Of a DNA stretch of 50,955 nt, positions 10,900 to 26,858 are shown in pieces. The stretch is from Lenisia limosa (Eukaryota > Protista > Breviatea), in NCBI GenBank assembly GCA_001655205.1, contig LPNZ01008900.1, positions 1-50,955 on the forward strand, in the 5' to 3' direction. Made by a program: the position numbers and the translations under genes. Below the pieces are notes generated by a model, which did not search any database, was not told the origin of the DNA, and saw only the letters and a program-made list of their open reading frames with translations. How positions within the stretch are numbered: position 1 is the first letter of the stretch; the number at the start of each line of letters is the position of its first letter.

Positions 10900-11951
10900 T
10901 TAATATTTCGCTTTAGTATGACTAAAAAAAAAAGCAAACTTCATTTGCTTTTCATTGCTCAATGAACTATTGAGAGTTTGATCAGTAATCTTGGTTCGTA
11001 AAACAATCAAATCGGTGATTTCGTCAAGAAGGTCACATATTGGAACCTATATCGTAAAAAAGACACCATTTGAAAAGCAGAAATTTTGACAGACCTTTTC
11101 AGCTGTATGCTTCTTATACTCATGAGAACGCAGCAAGTAGAGAAGCTGGGTTGTCTCCATTTGTTCTAGCAATGATATGACCTAATAGTATTATTAATTT
11201 ACGTTGTAAGGCAAATGATTGGTGAAAAAGTAATAATATCACCAATATCCATTTATAAACGTTATGATACCTGATATCTACATGCCACTTTACTTTGCCT
11301 AATAATGTTAAAGAATGTAATGGCTTCTTTATCATAATTGCTTATCCGGTGTGGAAACTGTATATAGCTATATATATATATATATATATATGATATAATT
11401 TATACATATAGTATACTATATANNNNNNNNNNNNNTATGATATATATTTTATAATATATATGATATATATTATTTATTACCCGTATACCTTTTCTTGAAA
11501 ATCTCTCAAGTCCAAAGATCCAAAGGAAGATGATTTTTTTCCGACTCTCACAGCCGGATTAAAGAGTTCATGAAAAAGTTTTTGATGAATGATTGGACCC
11601 TGATGGTGGTAAGTGGGGATGTACCATGTCTTCAACCGCAAGCCAAAAAAGAAGAAACAAAAGGGCATTCACAATAGATATGATATGACATGATATGATA
11701 TGATATGATTCAAGAGTGACAAACCTCCTTGTAACCTCCAGGGTCCTCATTACGAATCCCAGCAACAGCTGCAGTTACCGTTTCCAGATAAGTCTTATGT
11801 CCAAGCTAGAGGCTGTCAGACACTTCCACTTGCTCACTTGATGAAGCTGGATGGCACATTCCTGACACAACGTGTCCCGTTTAGAGACTGCATCAAACGC
11901 CTCTTTCCAAGTGAATACCTGGCTCAGCATTCCTCCAACATGTTGACCCAT
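10900..11951 (-). CDS. Further minus-strand exons; either the 5' part of the 6270-10745 gene or a separate small uncharacterised gene
   Basis: Short open segments (MGQHVGGMLSQVFTWKEAFDAVSKRDTLCQECAIQLHQ; RLKTWYIPTYHHQGPIIHQKLFHELFNP; CDLLDEITDLIVLRTKITDQ) are separated by intron-like AT-rich stretches. The splice phase across the MITE-containing intron was not resolved. Confidence 0.4.
11361..11475. repeat. TA-rich low-complexity/microsatellite tract (contains a 13-nt N-gap), intronic
   Basis: (TA)n with TATAGCTATA, TATACTATA and TGATATA interruptions, directly visible. Confidence 0.85.
11677..11709. repeat. (GATAT)n pentanucleotide microsatellite, intronic
   Basis: gatatgatatgacatgatatgatatgatatgat. 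Confidence 0.85.
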
Positions 11952-12372: not shown

Positions 12373-13806
12373 ATGTCAGGTTGGTATATATATTCATGGT
12401 TTTGAACGAAGTAACATTTTCGCAGGAGCGCTCCAACAATTCCGAAGCATCCTTGAGATGGAACCTGACCTACCAGTCGCAATGGTTGGCGTTTGCTTTC
12501 GGGCTGAATGGTATTATTGACATCTTTTTTAGGCTGGAGTAAGAACATTGACAATGGTTCTTAAGAAGTCAACAGGTTGGCTATTTTTCTCTATGTTGAC
12601 CACTCCAGCCTCTACCCTGATGGGTATCCAGCATGACCTTAGTGAAGCTGCATCAGAACTCTGTGTGGGTGTGGTGGCAATTGCAGGACATTTCATACTC
12701 TTTCAAACCGTGTTATTTCAACAGAAAAGCATGCCACAGGTTCTTTCCCTCAAGTCAAGCTGCGAGCTGTATCTACGTTATGTCACTCGAACTATATGCG
12801 ATTCGGTAATCTCTTCCTTCCCGTGCCATTACAACATAGGGTATTGAGCTTGAGAAGAGCAAGGAAGTCTTAGTGCAAAGAGGATCTGATTTTGTTCAAA
12901 AAGCAAGACTATCGCGTCACAATATCGCAAGAAGAGCTTTGTCCCTCATTCCTGACCATTGTGTTTGACGGCTGATATTTGTGTTGTTTCTTTCCTCATT
13001 CTATTCGTTTGTTGTATCTTTTTCTGAACTAATTATATTCTGCCCAAGACACCAATCCACGTGACCGACAACCTATTTCGCTCTTTACCAACAACTTGCA
13101 TTATCTTACCACCAATAGTATAATTATATTTACCCACCTCCCCCTGTAGACTGTTCTCATTCATGGATTTTCACGTATGGTGTGTCACACTATCCAACAA
13201 GCAGCGCAGTCAAGACGGCTCAGTGTCCTTTGTACAACATCAAACCCAGGCAATCAAGGGTATTATGGCTCTTCACGTTGTTTTCATTGTTTTTAGTCAG
13301 AAAACATTTGATGAGTTAAAAAATGCTGGTGTTGACATTCGTATGATTCCAGATGCTTCAATTGGAGTACATATGGAGACAGTAGGCAGTTTTTTTCTTC
13401 TTCTGATAGCATAGGTTGATTTGGTTATGTTTGGAGCTGAAGCTCTTGTTGAAAACGGTGGCATTGTGAATAGAGTCGGCACCTATCCCATTGCTGTACT
13501 GGCTCACTCTTTATCCAAACCTGTATATGTTATGGCGGAATCTTTCAAGGTATGTTTACTTCTTTGCTGCCATCTCCTGCTGTATTTGATCTTTTTAGTT
13601 TGCACGAATTTTCCCACTCAACCAAAGAGACCTTTGTCAAATCATGAAGGAGGATGGAGTAGGCACAGCATTGCACCTAACTTATCCTTCAGGACAACCC
13701 ACTGTACGACTTTACTCCCCCTCATCTTCTCTCAATGCTTGTCACCGATTTGGCCATTCTCACTCCATCTGCTGTGAGTGATGAGCTTATCAAGCTCCAT
13801 GCATAG
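12373..13806 (+). CDS. EIF2B1: Translation initiation factor eIF-2B subunit alpha
   Basis: [22 protein letters not shown]...[16 protein letters not shown]...TVLIHGFSR...[54 protein letters not shown]...[32 protein letters not shown]. These are classic eIF2B-alpha/GCN3 motifs. Confidence 0.95.
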
Positions 13807-15200: not shown

Positions 15201-15435
15201 CAGTACTTGGGGACTTGGGAGTTTGTGGTCGGGTGGTCGGTTTGTGGGTTTTAGGTGGGTTTGTGGCTTTGTGGTTGTGGGAGGGCTGAGTAGAGGCTGG
15301 GTGGCTGGGTACATACCCGAATACCACGACTCTGGAGATAACAGTTTATAAACCCAATGAAAGAAAAATAAAAAAATAACATGTGTGTACATCCCAAAAA
15401 TAAACAATACATATAAAACATGACTCTTGGCATCT

Positions 15436-18400
15436 CTAATCTTCGTCGGAATCAGAGGATTCTTCTACGTAACATCAGATTCAAGAAATGGAATGGCATT
15501 CAAAAGAACAATTTCACATCTCAACACAGCTCATTCTCACCATCTTCGTTTCCTTTCTGCTTGTTGTTCTGCTGTTGTTGTCCCTTGAACCATGCTTGAA
15601 CCTAGAAATTAGTACTGATTGTAATAAACATGAAAATTTGATGTCAATTAGTATTTTCGAAGTTCTGACTTCACCCTCTCCCACATCGGAGATCATGACA
15701 TCTTCAGCTTGGTTGAGTAGCATAGTGAGGTTGAATTTTGAGGCCTTTTCAACTGGAGAAAGACATTGCCACCACATTCGAACCTGTTCAAGACCACCGA
15801 CCGCACGGTTCGATTTCATGAGCTTCAAATATCAAACAAACGCAAAATCAACTAACCTTAGACTGCAGCTGATTGTATTCCATGTAAGTAGTCATGGAAT
15901 TGGCAATCACTGTCACGACCGAAATCCACACATGAAAGCCTTAAGTGTAATCGATGGGGTGGGGGTTACCGAAAGTTGCAAGAAGAGCACTGCAAGCTGA
16001 AAGAGAGTAAGTGATCCATTGCAAGGTCTTCAATTTGGTCTCAATTCGTCTGGTCTTGTGTGTGAAGTATTTGATCCCAGGTAACACTCTGCGAAATAAG
16101 TTGAAGTGAAGATTGTGTCACTAAACATACCTGAAAATGATATATTCCTCTGGCTGAATGTAATCCAGTGACTTCTGTGAGTACAAAGCAAGATGACTCA
16201 TCTAATATGTCAATGATTATCGTAATTACAGACATCATCCCCCCACTCACTCCACGGTGCTTTTCATCAGCCTCACTAAACGCATAGTTCTCCAAGCTGG
16301 TGATTGGTGGTGGTGAAACAAGGGGTTCGTTGAGCTAAGTGGTGAGAAACGACTCGTATTGACAAACAGGGTATTCATAGGCAGTCAGTCGGTCTGTGAA
16401 AATGTCATCAACTCCATCAGCAGAGGGCTAAAACATGAGTAACTGGAGGCATTTGGGGACCCACAATTGCGAGACTGCTTTCCTGGACATCTGACTCAAG
16501 GAGGGCCTGTGAAATGTTCTCTAACCGTTCAGCCAACAGAGCTTGACTGCGAAAATAAGAGCTATCGATATGGAGAGGCAAACCTTTCAAAACCCAGAAT
16601 GGCATAGTCGCCCTCAGAAGTTCTGTAGCGATAGATTTGTGAAAGAGTGGCCTCCGCGGCCGCACGGAGATAGATCCACTGAAGGGGTCAATCATTGGTA
16701 AGACAAAACAAACTTTGCTTCCTGAATTGAATCTGTTGTTTGCAGCCGTAATAACTCCAAGAAGAAGTGGGAGAACTGAGGCGGTGATGAAGAGACCAAA
16801 ATATCCAAGCTTCAACCCTACATACTGACAACCCAGGCCGAAAATCCCCATTCTCCTTCTTTGGGAATTTTTTCGAGGTCACCACTGTTTTCCAAAACAC
16901 TGTAGGTGATGGCAGAAATGGTAGTAATAATACCTAAAACGTTAACCCACATGTTAGAATAAGACAAACCAATCAAGAGAATCCAAATAAGCATGTTCTT
17001 GCTCATTGCCTTATGGCGCTTCGCATTGTACTGGTAAATAAGGAATCTATTCCAAGCAAGCATCAGCTGAGCGTCGTCTTCTCCTTCAACTGCTGCAGTC
17101 TTCCTTGCAGCTGTTTGACTGAGACTCTGTAGAATGTATTGTTCCAATGATTCAACCTAAGTGGTTAGAAAAGATCCTTTCAATCTAAACTCACTCCAAA
17201 TTCCGTTCGGAGATCGTAGACATAGAGGTTACCGTCAGCAACTACTTCCTCCACTTCAGCCTGAAGTGTGAGTGACTGCTGCACCGATGGATGAAATCGG
17301 TCATACAGTTAACCATTTTAAAAAGTTCGGTAAAAATATGATATTTGATGAGTGGACTATCTGTTATACGGTCAAATCCCCAAAAAACCTGTTGTCTGTG
17401 TATTTTGTGAAGCCCATCTGGGGTGGCGACAAGACGTGGTTTGGTCCGTTTGATTTCATCTAGTGGTCAAAATGTTTTACGAAAACGAGTAGGAACTACG
17501 TCATACAAATAATCATGAAAAATAGACACAACTAACCGATCAAGAGCTCAGGCTTGCTTGCCTTGAAGCGTGCGAATTCATCAACAAGTTCTAAAAAGTG
17601 ACACCGTTTTGTGAAAAGCAATCAAGTAGTGGAACAGACCTTGGATGGTCTTTCGATGGGTGTCATTGGGCTTAAGGAAGTCGAGATCTGGGTCATCTTC
17701 GGGTAGATCTGAAATGCTGTGTAGGCGAGCTTGAACCCCAACAGTAGAATCTTTCTTCGCAGCCTTATTGGCTCTGACGGCAATCTTAGCTTTGTCTTTG
17801 TCATCCTAATCTATCACAAACGACAGTTCACAAACTTTCTTTTGGATTTTGTCCAACTTCTTTTGTGCTTTAGTACCACCAGACAGTCCTAGAAAATGTG
17901 ACATAAGAGTATTTCACTAACGTCCAATTGGTTCCTCTTTTGGATCGCTCTTGGACTTTCCCTGGATACGACGCTGCATTTCTTTGATCATGTTTTTCTT
18001 CTTCTTCTCGTACTCAAAGAGGGTAGCAACGTTATCAGCGTAGTCGCCAGATCCATTGAAGATAATAATGGGTTGGCCTAGAACATAAAAGAACTTCATT
18101 ACTCCTAAAAGAAACTTATTACCACATTGGCTTCACCGTATTCTCCCCCACTCACCACCACGAACAGAATGCAACATTGTGTTCAGCGTACCCGCGGTTC
18201 CACCAACAACAACGAGAACGGTTGGGATAATCTTAGCATAGAACTGAAGCTGTTAATTGATAATGCCTCATACCGCTTCCAATTTGTAGCGCACACTGAT
18301 TTCAGCTCCCCAACTGGAGCCTGTCACGAAAATGAAGTGGCTGTGGTTTCGATCAATGGGGGCTCTAGAAAGTTATAAATATACGAGGCGCCAAACCCTT

Positions 18401-19588
18401 TGCCACAAGCCGTGAGGAAGGGGGGCGGTTCTTCACCATCCTTCTTTGCACGCATGTCCTTCTGACGGTGCTCGTAGACAAACTCCTGTCCCCTCATGCC
18501 TTGCAGAGGCTCACATCCCTTGGACATAGGGTAGGGCGACACCCTATATCATAACCGTAGTAATAATGCTTCTACATACTCGACCCAGCAGCCCAGCCCT
18601 AAAATATCTCTATTTAAACTAATCCCACAACCCATACATACGCCAAAAGGGGAACACTCTGAGCCCGTCCTTCAACTGCCTCTCCTGTGAGTTTCATGCA
18701 CCCTGACTCCATACCGCTGCAAAATAAATGCTGATATTGAAAAATGAGACAATAATAATTAATAAAGGTAGTATCAGGCCAACGCCATCAAGGCCAATAC
18801 GGACGTGATTATAAACTGCTAATTTATTGGCTGCTTGTATTCTGTGGATATTTATTAGATATGGATGCCACGCCCACCCAGACACGATCCATGCCTTGGT
18901 GTTGAGCGCGGACGTTACAACACCACGGCTGAAGAGGTTCTGGAGATTGATCATCATTCGATCATCGTCACTCTTCAGAGACTGCGCACCACCCGTGACG
19001 GATATGAGAAGCTGCACTGTGAGGCTGTGAAGTTCACAAACCTTAGGTCGCGGAAGGCCCCAGACATTATGAAGAACATTGTAGAGGTCCGCTGGGTTGA
19101 CAGTCTACGTGGAGGATGAGACATGATGACTCGAGACCAACTGGAGGGGTGATGAGGAACTTTGCTGATTTTCCATTTTCTTTAAATTTGATTTGTCCAA
19201 ATGACACATCTGGTCTCTGCAGGAAGGGGACTTCAACATCGTATATTCTAAACCCCGTGATATCCGAAATAGAATGTAAGGAGTCATTCATAGTGCCACC
19301 AACTTTTTGCCTGCTTCTCTACTCTGTGACATTTGAACAACTTGCCCCTCAAGCTGCTTGTTGCGGTTGTGGAATTGTTGGATTCGCTTGCCATACTCTT
19401 TGATCAGCTGTTGTTCGCGGTCGGTCGGTTTGGTTCCTGGTCTAAAAATGGAGGAGAGTGAATTGGGGAGCGAAGCACCAAATTTGACTCAAATAAGTCG
19501 GAATATCAACAACATAAACGATATCATACTGCAGAATTGATGAGACTTCAGGTGGTGGGGCTGAAGCCCTTGGTTGATCAGATGACAT
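15436..19588 (-). CDS. TRPM-type SLOG (LSDAT) domain fused to two SLATT-like 2TM modules (DUF4231-like then SLATT_1-like); roughly 25 introns
   Basis: Spliced SLOG: RPDVSFGQIKFKENGKSAKFLITPPTVNPADLYNVLHNVWGLPRPKLLISVTGGAQSL...AWIVSGGMESGCMKLTGEAV...SVPLLG...IDRNHSHFIFVTGSSWGAEISVRYKLE...PTVLVVVGGTAGTLNTMLHSVRGGQPIIIFNGSGDYAD. C-terminal half: LAWNRFLIYQYNAKRH...(2TM)...NNRFNSGSKWIYLRAAAEATLSQIYRYRT...LDYIQPEEYIIFRV...(2TM)...MTTYMEYNQLQSKLMKSNRAVGGLEQVRMWWQCLSPVEKA...DVQAW. TAG at 15436-15438. Confidence 0.88.
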
Positions 19589-19880
19589 TCCGCTTCTCTC
19601 TTCTGCCCTTCTTCTATACTGATTACAAGCTAAATTCCTAACTTCTAATTGACTTCAAGGTTGCTACCACTGTGAAAAAGGCCCGTGCATTTTTTTTACA
19701 ACTGAGTCTCCGCGACCGGATATCTATTTTGTTCCTTTTTCCTCCACCTCTCTTTCTCTCTTTTCTGTCGATCTTGTGATATTGTATTATCATCCAAATA
19801 TTACAAGCGTAGTTTAGGAATAGGATTTCAGTTGGATAAAATAGTTAGATGAAAGAGACTTATTGTTACTTTGATGCAAT

Positions 19881-22800
19881 ATGACCATCACTCTTCGTGA
19901 GCATCAGGTGGAATGTGTCAACAGAGCCAAGGATAAGAATGCTCTGATTGTGAAAGACACTGGTACCGGAAAAACCTTCGTGGCTGCAGAGGTAAGTTTG
20001 GGTTTTTCATGGCTGACATTCAGATTGCCCACCAAGCCCTTATCAGATCCGAGTTTGGAACCGAAAATCCGTTAACTCAAATTTTCTTTCTTGTCAAAAC
20101 TACAAATCTTGTTGAGCAACAGGTTGGAATGTTAGGCTTAGGTTTTAAATACCTAGGCTGCCAGCTTTGAGCAGTATTTTGAAGGTCGGAATCTCAGCAA
20201 TAATTGTGTTGGACGAGCCCATGGTTTGCACTATTCATTTTGCCCTTCATGTTTAATCTTTAGGTGGATGTACGTCTGAAAAAATACAAGGAATGGTGAG
20301 TAGTGTTGTGTTTTCGGTTATTTATTGAACCAAGAAGGCTCTCGTTTCTACTTTTCAGGGTCTGTTCACAGTTTAGCTTCGAAGATGCGCTGTTATTGTC
20401 TTAACTGCTGGATCATTTATGAATTACATTAATAAAAAGTAGTGCTACCGTACTCTAAAGTGTGAAACTCATTTTCATAGAGACGTAAACTTGTATAAAG
20501 TGAGTTTAGTTATCCTTGATGAGATTCATAACGCAACAAAGAAAGATGACTTCCTGGTAGTAAGCGGGTCTAGTGGTTTATTGCTGTTAGAAATGATAAC
20601 AGACGGGGTTTTTTTTTAAAAAAAATTCAATTTAAAATTTTCGTGATTAATTTGAAATTCACTTCCACTTCCATTTTAGCTGAAAAGTGACATCTTTATT
20701 TAAATTTTCAATCAATATTTTGAGTGCTGAAAATCTACGACTTGGATAAGTAATTGATAACAATCTCGCTATAGGTCTGTCGAGAGGTTCATAAAGTATG
20801 GGAAACTCGCGGAACAAATGCGCACCCACAACTTATCGGCTTCACAGCAACACCTGGTTTGGTTTTCTCCCCTATCTTTGTTATTGTTTAGGAGATAATC
20901 AAAGGAAAATTTACAAGCTGAAAACAGAAACAAAACGTAAGTGACATTGTCTATTGTTAACCACGGTTCAGTTGATCTTGTATACAACATCACGACAAAC
21001 GAACCAGTATCAAGGGGCCAAACAGAGACTGTTGCTCTCCAATCAACTAACTACGAGCGAGTTCTTTTGAACGTACTCTCAATGGAGGTTTGCAATTCAC
21101 CGGAAGACTGACCGTCTTTTTAGTTTTGGACAATCGTAAAGGATATTGGAGAAGGTTTAGATTTTCTCAATGTGACAATTCAACTCAATGACTCATTTGA
21201 GGCAGCTTTACGTGGCTACTTGTTAACCTCCCTTTGTGTAAGAGGATCTTCATGTGCAAACCTTGAAAAAAAATTTTACTCCTAGAATGAGGAGAAACCA
21301 AAGCCTCTAATGCAGCTAGCCTTTATTCACCAAGTATACAACTGGACAAAACACAATGTTTGGGGGATTTTAAAGTACTGTCATGTATTTACCTTGGGAC
21401 ACTTGTAAACTACAAACAGATGACTTCATATAGATTATATATACTATTTGTATAATATATGTATATATATTATACTATATAGCTATATGATATACTTATG
21501 TCATTGCATCTAGAGTCCGAGAAAGGCATTTGAGGCTCTTCAATGTTGTCAATCCAACAATGTCGATTTTCTGAAGTTCAAATACCTTACACCTGTATGT
21601 ATTGAGTCAATTGGGATTTATTTTCAGGAGTTAAATGGGCTTCTTTCCAAATTCAGTTCCCATTCTTTCCCTAAATTCAGTCAGAAGGTAAATACTAATT
21701 ACAGCCAACTTATGACTAGATTGAAATGACACATTCCAAAATCTCTAAAGCCATGACTGGTGAATTGTATGGAAACAAGAACACAAGTAAATTTTCGTAA
21801 TATCTCACATATCTCCCACTTCAGATCAATCTGCGGACTTAATTAAGCCTATTTTGGTGATTGTTCAGCAAAAAGAGATGGTTTACAACCTTCTACATTC
21901 GTTTTCAGGGTTAGGAGAAAATCTTTGTAATCCTATCAGGACAATGATAGATATCTTAAACCCCGTCTTCATGATCGGTCAGGACCAGTCACCATCGAGC
22001 CGGTTTCTGTGGCACAAGCTGCTCACTCACTTCCATATTGAGGTAGTAAGATTGTTCTATTGGTTCTAAACCTCTAGGGATCAGATATTGCATTTAAAGC
22101 TGGTCAGTCAATCGGAGGACAGAAAGAAGCACTGAGTTCTCTCAAACTCCCTCTTAAAGTTTGTGTACTTTAAGCACATGTAATACCTACAATTATCTTG
22201 TATTTTATCATATGTGGATATGCATCATTGTCTCATAATAATATTAAGATGCAAATGCTAACACTCAGGAAAACGGAAGTCGACTGATGGTGGCCACCGC
22301 AATTGGGGCTGAAGGTGTTGATCAGTCCTTCAAGCTTGTTGTGGTTTTTGATGAAATCCCTTCTGCCACAAAATTCAACCAAGTAGGTTGCGTTGTAGCC
22401 TAATTCGTGTAGACAATTGGAAGAGTGAGAGATGTTGACGGTAAAGCAATTTGCTTGACCGACCCCCCTGTAAGTCTTCACCCAGCTTGATTTATTCATT
22501 GTTAGGGAATTCACCGAATTGAGCGATTCAAACAGACCAAATCAAAGCTCAAAACGAATATGAATGCCGCAAAGGTTGGCGGCTCTTGTTTGTGACATCC
22601 AGATGATGACAGGTCCCGCAGACCCTGATGAAGAACGTAGACCTAAGAGTAAACGTGTCAAGTCAAAAAATAAAAATGTCATTGCTGCCAATAAAGTAAG
22701 GGGTTCAGGCACAAATAGATATTTTGCGATCAGGACTTACCCTTTGGCACCTAATTTTAATGAGTTAGTTCACATTTGTTGAAGTTGTCAAACAATTGTT

Positions 22801-25083
22801 TTGGCCACGCTTATTTTCCAGGACCATATTGCGCCTGCCAAAATTCCACTTCGTCGCAACTTCGACCGCGACCCATCGCAATTCCAACAGGACTCCCCCC
22901 AAGAAGAAACGCCAAGCACCAGCTCTTTGGAGGAACAGTCCGAGGGCTTCAGTGACATTGGCACCTGCAGCACACTCCAGGACGAGTCTGATGGTGTTGA
23001 CGACATTCTGGACGAAATCCACAAAAGAACTTTGGAATTATTTCAAAATGGCTTCAATGATTCTGATGGTGAAACTGAAGAAACGCTTTCGCTGCTTGAT
23101 GAAAACTTAGACGCGTCGGTTTTGACTTCATCAGACGCAGTTGAAGAGCGAACTACTTCCACTCTCTTGAATGAAGAAGGTAACACATTCCTTGACTCTT
23201 ATACTTGCTTAGACGAAATCTTATCAGTAACAACCGTAAACTCCGAGCTTTTTGAGCAGGTGTTGCGAGAGGAACGCGAAAAGAAAATGAGAAAGGCTCA
23301 GAAAGCCCTCGTCCCGACTCCCTCTGGTAAGCAGCGTTTTTACAACTTACCATGTAGAAAGCTCCTATGAGGAAGCCACTGAGCTGCCGAAAAGCCTATT
23401 TGTCGACTCACTGTGCGAAAAACAATACTGTCACCCTTATCCACAATCCAAAGACACTTCACAGTCCTCCAATGAGTCTGAATTCCTCATCCCCAAGCAA
23501 ACTCCTCCTTCAGAATCAGGCGCTTCTGTCCATATCCTACCAGATCCTAGCAAGCCAGCTCCACCACGAGAACTTGAGCCACTTGCTGACATCCCTTTAC
23601 AAACACAGCTCACATCTCCATACATTCCTTCTCACCAGACACAGACCACCAAGCCAACGCAGGTGTCACCGTTCACTGCCAAAAAAGACCCTTTTCAGCT
23701 TTCACAAAGCGTGGTGTCAAGCGTTATCTCTCTAAAAAACAAGCAAAATCAGGTTCAAATTCAAATGGACCCTTTCAACCAATCAAGAATACAGATTTCA
23801 CCAAAGGGCAGAATTACTGTTCAGAATGGCAAACCTCAAGCTCCGAAGCATACTCCTTCGTTTTCCAACCCCAGCCCCAGCCTTAACGACCTTCTAAGTA
23901 CGGCGGAAAAGGTCACACCTGCACCGTCACCAGCCACACCATTCTCCTCCGCGCCAGCAAAAAAAGAAGAGGCAACTAAGACTCCAGAACCTCGTAGGTC
24001 CACCATTGCTAAACGCTTTAGCCCATATCCCTGGTGGCAAAATTCCCAGGAATATCCTGTCAGGTGTTGTTGACGACAGTCCTCAAACAGTGGAATTCCT
24101 CCAGACTCTGATTCAGCTCTACTCCGAAAAGAATAAGGTTGTCTTGATAAGGTTATCATAGTTTAGCTGTCGGATAATAACATGAACGCAATCAGTAACT
24201 GTATGTCTGAATGGACTCGTGCCAAATGGTCAAAGCCGGAGTATCGTTACTCAAAAAGTGGGGAGTTTCGTCGCAGTTCACAGTATAGGCCAACTCAGTC
24301 CCACTTTATGGGTGGCTACTCTCCTGATCCGCGCGCCTGGTATGTTAAGCCACAGTCTACAGTCTTACTGTTAAGGGGCTAAAAAGGCCAATGAAGAGTG
24401 CAAGGGGGAGCCAAGTCATGGCGCAAGGTGTGTGTTGAAAGAAGCAACATCTGATACGATTATTGGTCTTCATTACGGCATGATTGTTCAGATGGTGGGT
24501 GACTGAAAATCCGCATCCTATTCTCAATGTCAAGTCTGCTGCCAATACCAGTAAATCTGAGGCTAAAAATGTTGTTTGTGCTGTAAGTTCCACTGTTATG
24601 GTTCCTGTTTATTCCCAAGGTTGCTCTCGTTGCCAATATCGCTCTGTTCCCCCTAAACTCACAGCAGGTTTGTTACAATACCTTTTTTCACTTTAGATAC
24701 CACCGCTGCAGAAAGATGTTCCAACACCATCAGCTTCAGTATGTTGGATTTTCATTTTACATTGTAGCCTCCTATTAAAGATGCCCCAATGATATTTGGA
24801 GTGAAACCTGCTTTGGAAAACCCCCAGGTTAACTGTTATTCTAATAACCAGACAAAATTTAATGAATTGAAACAAAAGTACCCCCATCTTTCTATTGCGC
24901 TTTCTCTTGATTCAGGTTAGCAATTTCTGCGGTTACAGTTTAGGATCACAGGCTACCAAAGCCTCCGCTTGTTTCATGTCACCAACCCCGTTCCAGTACC
25001 CATTTGACCCATTAATCTTCTCAAATGGAAAAACGGTGCATCAAACGGTACATGAGATTCTCTTTTACTTTATAGAAACATGA
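19881..25083 (+). CDS. RIG-I/Dicer-class (SF2 DExH) RNA helicase with a long disordered linker and one or two putative C-terminal dsRNA-binding domains; no RNase III
   Basis: Q motif LREHQ; Walker A DTGTGKT (19956-19976); DEIH (20518-20529); motif III PQLIGFTATP; motif IV ILVIVQQKEMV; GQSIGGQKEALSSLK; motif V RLMVATAIGAEGVD; motif VI FNQ/TIGRVR. C-terminal segments NAISNCMSEWTRAKWSKPEYRY...SKSEAKNVVCAVAL and ENPQTKFNELKQKY are dsRBD-like. Confidence 0.85.
21425..21500. repeat. TA-rich low-complexity tract in a helicase intron
   Basis: catatagattatatatactatttgtataatatatgtatatatattatactatatagctatatgatatac. Confidence 0.75.
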
Positions 25084-26550: not shown

Positions 26551-26858
26551 GCTGAGAATGCGTGGAGGGGGGTGCTCTCTGCTCCTGATTAAAAGACTTT
26601 CTCCACCTTCTCTAGTTATCAAATACTACAATACTACTATGTTAAATTTTGGCCAAAAGAGGCGGGNNNNNNNNNNNNNNNNNNNNNNNNNNNNNNNNNN
26701 NNNNNNNNNNNNNNNNNNNNNNNNNNNNNNNNNNNNNNNNNNNNNNNNNNNNNNNNNNNNNNNNNNNNNNNNNNNNNNNNNNNNNNNNNNACAACTGAGA
26801 CAGACTGAGAAAGAGAAATACAGAGATACACCTTGAAAATACAGAAATAGGCAAATCA

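Follow-up and report, generated by a model that had tools for sequence, protein, structure and literature searches.

The locus examined here raises the question of whether a free-living protist holds, in working order, a protein in which a presumed nucleotide sensor, the SLOG domain, is followed on the same chain by membrane modules of the SLATT clan. It lies at positions 15436 to 19588 of a 50,955-nucleotide stretch of DNA from the breviate Lenisia limosa (contig LPNZ01008900.1 of assembly GCA_001655205.1), which was analysed at its full length and is called the window below. SLOG and SLATT were reportedly defined by Burroughs et al. in 2015. Bacterial immune modules that persist in eukaryotes (TIR, cGAS-STING, gasdermin and SIR2) have changed the picture of how innate immunity arose. 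The SLOG-SLATT effector, until now a computational prediction in bacteria, is found here intact, spliced and expressed in a free-living anaerobic protist. We put at roughly 70% the probability that the gene is an expressed eukaryotic member of a bacterial family, most likely acquired long ago, which works as a nucleotide-gated membrane effector.

A spliced and expressed eukaryotic gene

All the motifs cited in an earlier sequence-only reading of this DNA were found on the minus strand between 15436 and 19588. The first of these coordinates is the final base of the stop codon and the second belongs to the first ATG following an in-frame stop. For the study of splicing, a polyA metatranscriptome run (X1) served as RNA source and a further run (X2) as DNA source; their contigs were aligned to 15300-19700, and an intron was counted as RNA-verified when its joint was present in the X1 RNA contigs and absent in the X2 DNA, the splice ends being checked. 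Eighteen introns of 30 to 128 nt, all of the GT-AG type (CT..AC on the plus strand), are skipped in three RNA contigs, and their removal leaves an uninterrupted frame of 580 codons running from QPIIIFNGSGDYAD through the stop codon at 15438-15436. Apart from two gaps of 7 and ~120 nt, both within exons, the three contigs cover 15358-18206, and the last (3') 1744 nt of the coding sequence were taken from them. One contig, reaching from ~17125 to ~18206, joins the exon with which the first membrane module begins to the SLOG exon carrying VVVGGTAGT, and because this single contig spans both, the SLOG and membrane halves share one transcript and belong to one gene.

A nineteenth intron (18078-18155) is consistent with the RNA depth figures, and above 18240 the RNA cover is zero. 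There, the 5' part of the model combines GT-AG signals and homology with a codon-usage score that had been trained on the section backed by RNA; the other eight introns, in the 5' third, are predictions that draw on splice signals, on a continuous reading frame and on colinear homology with the family described below. Residues 1-83 and an insertion at residues 215-258 are the least certain parts of the model. A splice model that maximised the open frame over-extended the exons and was superseded by the RNA joints and the codon-scored model. The earlier estimate of about 25 introns came close, the model having 27, of which 18 are RNA-confirmed:

15436..19588, minus strand: whole coding region, 28 exons and 27 introns, 901 amino acids, ATG at 19588, stop TAG at 15438-15436
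15465..17921, minus strand: span of the 18 RNA-verified introns (RNA joints, GT-AG)
15465-15540, 15602-15684, 15823-15856, 15940-15969, 16089-16130, 16202-16250, 16335-16367, 16428-16464, 16547-16583, minus strand: first nine RNA-verified introns (RNA joints)
16679-16713, 16776-16825, 16934-16969, 17157-17194, 17261-17388, 17460-17536, 17591-17639, 17806-17835, 17889-17921, minus strand: last nine RNA-verified introns (RNA joints)
18078..19529, minus strand: span of the nine introns with no listed RNA joint, namely 18078-18155 (fits the RNA depth), 18244-18273, 18365-18396, 18544-18579, 18610-18641, 18717-18877, 19105-19141, 19248-19303 and 19442-19529, placed by GT-AG signals, frame and homology

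The gene is real, expressed, intron-rich and eukaryotic. Bacterial contamination or an assembly chimera might be suspected, given that the assembly contains bacterial contigs and that all the sequence relatives retrieved are bacterial; however, the 18 spliceosomal introns removed in polyA RNA refute this explanation, to which we leave practically no chance, and the whole gene stretch lies in a single 178-kb DNA contig of run X2, between neighbouring genes that are eukaryotic (an IF-2B family gene and a helicase gene). The argument against contamination, which had been drawn from the introns alone, is strengthened by the polyA RNA and by these neighbours.

Full-length homology with a bacterial family

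The family was reached through a 41-residue piece of the gene (16687-16565), which gave two matches when compared by tblastn with plasmids. One of them falls within a "DUF4231 domain-containing protein" gene on plasmid NZ_CP128403.1 of Ca. Chlorohelix allophototropha, whose product (WP_341472297.1, 625 residues) carries in the same order LSDAT_prok (117 bits), DUF4231 (48.6 bits) and SLATT_1 (84 bits). A search with this protein returned 91 proteins of 417 to 755 residues, nearly all of them with the same three Pfam families, and a hidden Markov model (HMM) of the family was built locally from these 91 bacterial LSDAT_prok, DUF4231 and SLATT_1 proteins. The spliced protist protein matches this profile with 388.8 bits (E 1.9e-117), against 2 bits for the best of 1000 shuffles. 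The match is made of three colinear pieces (profile positions 13-112, 131-414 and 431-581, corresponding to residues 84-201, 259-686 and 745-895) and extends over conserved elements between the domains (VADGNL..., LAERLENIS..., PEEY...). All seven family-invariant columns are identical in the protist protein, as are 48 of the 74 columns conserved to at least 90%. Because the profile match is colinear and all the invariant residues are retained, we consider the protein a full-length member of the family. AlphaFold2 gave a confident model of one bacterial member (predicted local distance difference test, pLDDT, 81; predicted template modelling score, pTM, 0.75).

For the domain layout, Pfam and NCBIfam scans were run on single exons, and the spliced protein was scored against the local profile. 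Together with a hydropathy scan for the transmembrane (TM) segments, they give the following parts:

19196..19588, minus strand: N-terminal extension, residues 1-83, absent from the bacterial family (the profile match begins at residue 84) and free of RNA cover
18004..19195, minus strand: SLOG domain of the LSDAT type, residues 84-345 (Pfam LSDAT_euk and LSDAT_prok exon matches; profile positions 13-112 and 131-218; TRPM2 and TRPM3 alignments)
17389..18003, minus strand: K/E-rich linker, residues 346-487, an insertion of ~125 residues that the bacterial proteins lack (gap in the profile alignment); spliced RNA covers the linker completely
16468..17260, minus strand: first membrane module, of the DUF4231 type, residues 488-686 (profile positions 219-414; Pfam DUF4231; tblastn match to the Chlorohelix plasmid protein)
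16732..17000, minus strand: TM1, residues 562-584, and TM2, residues 601-622 (hydropathy scan), split by introns 16934-16969 and 16776-16825
15685..16174, minus strand: second membrane module, of the SLATT_1 type, residues 745-872, with PEEYIIFR, TM3, TM4 and WWQCLSPVEK (profile positions 431-581, 126.7 bits)
15881..16024, minus strand: TM3, residues 781-798, and TM4, residues 799-818 (hydropathy scan), a tight helical hairpin split by a 30-nt intron at 15940-15969 (RNA)
15439..15601, minus strand: Gln-rich acidic C-terminal tail, residues 873-901 (RNA-supported translation)

The N-terminal extension is predicted from its sequence to contain a charged, probably coiled stretch. In the SLOG domain, which carries an insertion of ~45 residues (215-258), the motifs LLISVTGGAQ, SGGMESGCMK, NHSHFIFV, VVVGGTAGT and GSGDYAD are all present, as the sequence-only reading had it; with them the domain has the GG, NHSHF, GG.G and GSG.AD motifs of the bacterial family. 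Pfam LSDAT_euk matches three of its exons with 28 bits (cut-off 25.7), 18.3 and 15 bits, colinearly at profile positions 11-67, 131-163 and 206-242 of 266, and LSDAT_prok matches the NHSHF exon with 21.5 bits. The first membrane module shows in order a VADGNLYVY element, an AWNRF helix, TM1, TM2 and a helix with WIYLRAAAEATLSQIYRYRT, and the KW.LLR..AE....YRYR helix of the bacterial family is present in it; DUF4231 matches the exon holding WIYLRAAAEATLSQIYRYRT (16687-16565) with 15.5 bits at positions 70-96 of 103, and the profile positions of this module sit inside a domain match of 215.7 bits. In the second module, SLATT_1 matches the exon with KYFTHKTRRIETKLKTLQW (16087-15971) at positions 10-44, with 14 bits in Pfam and 14.4 bits in NCBIfam. 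The exon matches to DUF4231 and SLATT_1 are weak singly, yet they are the sole matches of their exons and both families belong to the small SLATT clan.

Altogether there are four TM segments arranged as two hairpins, and the family profile accounts for the whole C-terminal half by DUF4231 and SLATT_1; exon scans found no ion-channel family, and no PADLOC model matched the exons. The architecture is SLOG-DUF4231-SLATT_1, the standard bacterial layout with eukaryote-specific insertions. This bears out the earlier proposal of two tandem two-helix SLATT modules behind a TRPM-type SLOG, now specified as DUF4231 followed by SLATT_1, and the HMMER comparison suggested with it gave exon matches to all four families (LSDAT_euk, LSDAT_prok, DUF4231 and SLATT_1). 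A recent tandem duplication of the membrane modules was considered and rejected: their local alignment score of 40 was reached by 33 of 500 shuffles, and they belong to different families of the SLATT clan.

Judged by sequence comparison, the protein is a divergent member of a prokaryotic family. In trees it stands on a very long branch of 1.9-2.0 substitutions per site, nearest to Chloroflexota sequences though without firm support, and the gene was most likely acquired from bacteria long ago and later filled with introns. The long branch, the large insertions and an identity of at most 34% to any relative could also be the marks of a relic, that is of a transferred gene that is transcribed but useless and drifts towards loss. 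We hold this to be very unlikely, since the 901-codon frame is intact over 27 introns, all the family-invariant residues are retained and the transcript is spliced and polyadenylated.

Searches with smaller pieces of the gene or in other collections returned no further relatives. The 75-residue SLOG exon had no match at E 0.001 in a library of 1.8 billion proteins, a single exon being too short for it, and revealed no related loci in metagenome contigs and genome contigs; a homologue search with a 112-residue open reading frame (ORF) found nothing beyond its own ORF, the family alignment found no related loci in viral contigs, and Atlas look-ups of single exons gave chance neighbours only. The top match of the SLOG exon in the PDB, the transcription activator-like effector (TALE) protein Hax3 (E 6e-9), was discarded as a repeat artefact made of eleven weak matches to one stretch of 25 residues. 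This stretch, PKVCELHSLTVQLLISVTGGAQSLK (18970-19045, minus strand), weakly resembles each Hax3 repeat, and we judged the resemblance to be due to chance.

Putative ligand pocket, bacterial neighbours and proposed function

When the family profile was compared with solved structures, it matched through its SLOG part only, and the TRPM2 MHR1/2 domain was the best match with 93 bits. In TRPM2, this SLOG domain binds ADP-ribose (ADPR) and 8-bromo-cyclic ADP-ribose (8-Br-cADPR) via Y295, R302 and R358; Y295 stacks on the ligand and R302 contacts the adenosine ribose (PMC6759353). In a phmmer alignment of the protist protein with human TRPM2, W279 falls on Y295 and R286 on R302. The features concerned are:

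18289..18312, minus strand: pocket residues W279 and R286 (phmmer alignment to human TRPM2 residues 277-306)
18034..18054, minus strand: GSGDYAD motif (family alignment), with D at the presumed position of TRPM2 R358, a phosphate contact

The third contact, R358, we take to lie in a GSGR motif of TRPM2. Its presumed position varies in the bacterial members, which read GSGR, GSGG, GSGD or GSGP. The glycine loops of the SLOG domain are intact, and from its sequence the pocket looks functional, with a ligand that cannot be named.

Another role for this domain would be enzymatic: as a LOG-like nucleotide N-glycosidase it would make or destroy the signal, and the membrane part would be an anchor only. 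The SLOG superfamily does include LOG-type hydrolases (PMC9503650), and the PDB search weakly touches the LOG-like protein 1rcu. However, the non-catalytic MHR1/2 domains of TRPM proteins are by far the best matches. Moreover, in LOG enzymes an acidic residue follows the PGGxGT motif, and the second glycine motif of the protist protein, GGTAGTLNTM, does not have it, so that we rate an enzymatic role as very unlikely indeed.

Further indications on function come from the bacterial relatives. A search with the family profile gave 610 proteins at E 1e-5 (the best 120 of the 610 being all of bacterial type), and a scan with one genome per bacterial or archaeal species located relatives in 352 stretches, prominently in Acidobacteriota, Bacteroidota, Chloroflexota, Myxococcota, large sulfur bacteria and Verrucomicrobiota. 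An ad-hoc TIR profile detected a TIR-domain ORF no more than 7 kb away in 25 of 87 bacterial loci; in 14 of these 25, the ORF is the directly downstream one and has the same orientation. Ten of the TIR ORFs were checked: Pfam TIR_2 was found in eight, and in the other two WD40 repeats fill the best 25 families listed. Divergently transcribed neighbours at three loci encode TIR_2-NB-ARC-WD40, TIR_2-AAA_35, and TIR_2 plus nSTAND1-WD40 genes, and a TIR_2-NACHT-FGE-sulfatase gene lies within 1.2 kb of the Chlorohelix gene. SLOG-DUF4231-SLATT_1 with TIR looks like an undescribed or little-described pairing of the Thoeris kind, and the TIR neighbours in bacteria support a membrane effector gated by a nucleotide derived from nicotinamide adenine dinucleotide (NAD). 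The survey turns the relation between this family and TIR-domain genes into a concrete, testable link.

Some bacterial loci are worth describing in their own right. Among the loci surveyed (L009-L087, L001, L004, L005 and L007), those with a TIR partner often have it immediately downstream, as a TIR-WD40 or short TIR gene, or else as a divergently transcribed TIR-STAND gene. In Cystobacter fuscus (L069), for instance, a TIR gene lies downstream. Two bacterial variants of 1080 to 1110 residues (L004:8001-11243 and L008:642-3974; P0094 and P0095) carry two SLOG domains before DUF4231 and SLATT_1, and one of them adjoins two TIR_2-NB-ARC-WD40 genes. In Niastella soli (L006:4491-5828), the divergent neighbour of the family gene encodes a DUF4062 protein and is followed by an AAA ATPase gene.

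For ligand binding and the ligand's identity, gating, pore formation and the biological role, we infer the following course. The ligand of the cytosolic SLOG domain would be a small nucleotide derived from NAD and belonging to the ADP-ribose or cyclic-ADP-ribose class. Once bound, it would rearrange the membrane part, whose four helices form the DUF4231 hairpin and the SLATT_1 hairpin, or change its oligomeric state; the membrane part would then pass ions or breach the membrane, and the outcome may be a stress, immune or cell-death response. The nucleotide-gated membrane effector proposed in the sequence-only reading is the best functional reading, by analogy with bacterial relatives that often lie beside TIR genes.

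A related proposal sees in the protein a physiological ligand-gated channel similar to TRPM2, which would detect an NAD metabolite arising under stress, free ADP-ribose or another, and respond by a reversible ion flow. It is favoured by the TRPM type of the SLOG domain, whose W279 and R286 match TRPM2 ligand contacts, by the fact that most bacterial loci have no TIR partner and by the constitutive detection of the gene in polyA RNA. Against it, the only known role of SLATT-clan modules is that of effectors in conflict systems, and a defence function is indicated by the TIR neighbours enriched in bacteria; we regard such a channel as unlikely.

The nucleotide-gated effector that we prefer has to be weighed against several observations which count against it. 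RNA support for the gene model stops short of its 5' third. In the pocket, Asp at the presumed R358 position means that the phosphate contact differs, hence the ligand cannot be specified. When the PDB was searched with the family profile, no solved structure matched the DUF4231/SLATT_1 part, and because of this, pore formation is something we only infer. In bacteria, 62 of the 87 loci have no TIR gene within 7 kb, and tblastn found no TIR/STAND homologue in the window, where linkage is not expected to persist in a eukaryote. Finally, no experimental work on the family, bacterial or eukaryotic, was found in the literature searched.

Around the gene, the following features were observed in the window. 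A helicase gene region (19881-25083, plus strand) starts opposite the SLOG-SLATT gene, the two being separated by a short gap:

19589..19880, no strand assigned: head-to-head gap of 292 bp, with the ATG of the helicase gene at 19881 (plus strand) and an ORF at 19881-20075 carrying DTGTGKT

This gap is a possible shared bidirectional promoter. Downstream of the gene, an ORF piece at 13421-13774 (plus strand) matches Pfam IF-2B (initiation factor 2B family) with 48.6 bits and represents a eukaryotic housekeeping neighbour. The window contains six runs of N (assembly gaps) at 1790-2074, 11423-11435, 26667-26790, 39968-40242, 45576-45645 and 50305-50314, none of them inside the gene.

One may go further and imagine a complete axis of the Thoeris kind in the protist, in which a TIR-type or DUF4062-type STAND sensor encoded elsewhere in the genome would make an ADP-ribose-derived signal on infection, and the SLOG-DUF4231-SLATT_1 protein would read it and open the membrane, possibly under co-regulation with the helicase gene. 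We offer this as a tentative extension which is rather doubtful. If true, a bacterial-type second-messenger immune effector would be operating in a eukaryote of Obazoa, the group that also contains TRPM-bearing lineages.

Comparison with bacterial, eukaryotic, TRPM and Thoeris proteins

The protist protein shares with the bacterial LSDAT_prok-DUF4231-SLATT_1 proteins the three domains, their order and colinearity over the full length. The bacterial architecture is already annotated, for example by the Joint Genome Institute (JGI), and members from Pyxidicoccus, Hyalangium, Niastella, Anaerolineae and Pyrinomonadaceae are recorded as "DUF4231 domain-containing protein". The identity to bacterial members is only 27-34%, and the 27 introns, the 83-residue N-terminal extension, the ~45-residue SLOG insertion, the ~125-residue K/E-rich linker and the acidic tail set the protist gene apart from them.

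Relatives of this architecture appear to exist in other eukaryotes. Three Atlas clusters of proteins of 935 to 1079 residues with SLATT_1 and DUF4231, one of them also with LSDAT_prok, are 50-80% Eukaryota, Haptophyta being the commonest group in two of the three. "SLATT effector domain-containing proteins" of 740 to 1230 residues in AlphaFold DB align over the whole bacterial model. We presume these entries to be eukaryotic from the Atlas taxon shares and from our reading of their accession series. Three of them (A0A812PM83, A0A813A3B9 and A0A7S3DT55) are likened to the protist gene by their domains and by structural alignment to the bacterial model, not by sequence; in general, the long eukaryote-like SLATT proteins of both resources (740-1230 residues) have DUF4231 and SLATT_1, and some LSDAT_prok. 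Because the eukaryote-labelled Atlas clusters and the AlphaFold DB entries share the layout, the architecture is not unique to the breviate lineage. A SLATT gene of the haptophyte Gephyrocapsa huxleyi (E. huxleyi EMIHUDRAFT_256646) flips its expression during virus infection (2026 preprint). No paper describing the family in breviates was found in the literature searched. What is already known is the bacterial kind, uncharacterised by experiment; what is new is the protist member, spliced and expressed.

With TRPM2, the protein has in common the SLOG subfamily, as seen from the exon matches to Pfam LSDAT_euk and from W279 and R286 at ADPR-contact positions. It differs from TRPM channels by having no MHR3/4, six-helix TRP pore, TRP helix or NUDT9-H domain, and by carrying instead two hairpins of the SLATT clan. 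Two further ties to TRPM had been proposed and do not hold. The stretch read as an N-terminal extension typical of TRPM and of eukaryotes also occurs in the bacterial family. An intermediate position towards TRPM is unsupported, since the first SLOG piece of the bacterial members matches TRPM chains slightly better (18-19 bits) than the protist exon does (16 bits); the comparison of LSDAT_euk and LSDAT_prok scores was mixed. The protist gene brings no new view of the origin of TRPM channels.

Thoeris systems share with the proposed mechanism the logic by which a TIR-made ADPR derivative activates an effector. In type I, sensing falls to the SLOG domain of ThsA, a SIR2-SLOG protein, and this domain reads TIR-made 3'cADPR. 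In type VII, SLATT is the membrane effector, in ThsH; this effector is associated with TIR-made cyclic ADPR and has been modelled as a filament that spans the membrane (bioRxiv 10.64898/2025.12.03.692087). Unlike in ThsA, no SIR2 domain was found in any exon scan of the protist gene, and the relation to ThsH holds at the level of the Pfam clan only. In the protist protein, the sensor and the membrane effector lie on one chain, an arrangement that could serve to ask by which NAD-derived nucleotide a SLATT pore is gated and whether pathways of this kind operate in eukaryotes.

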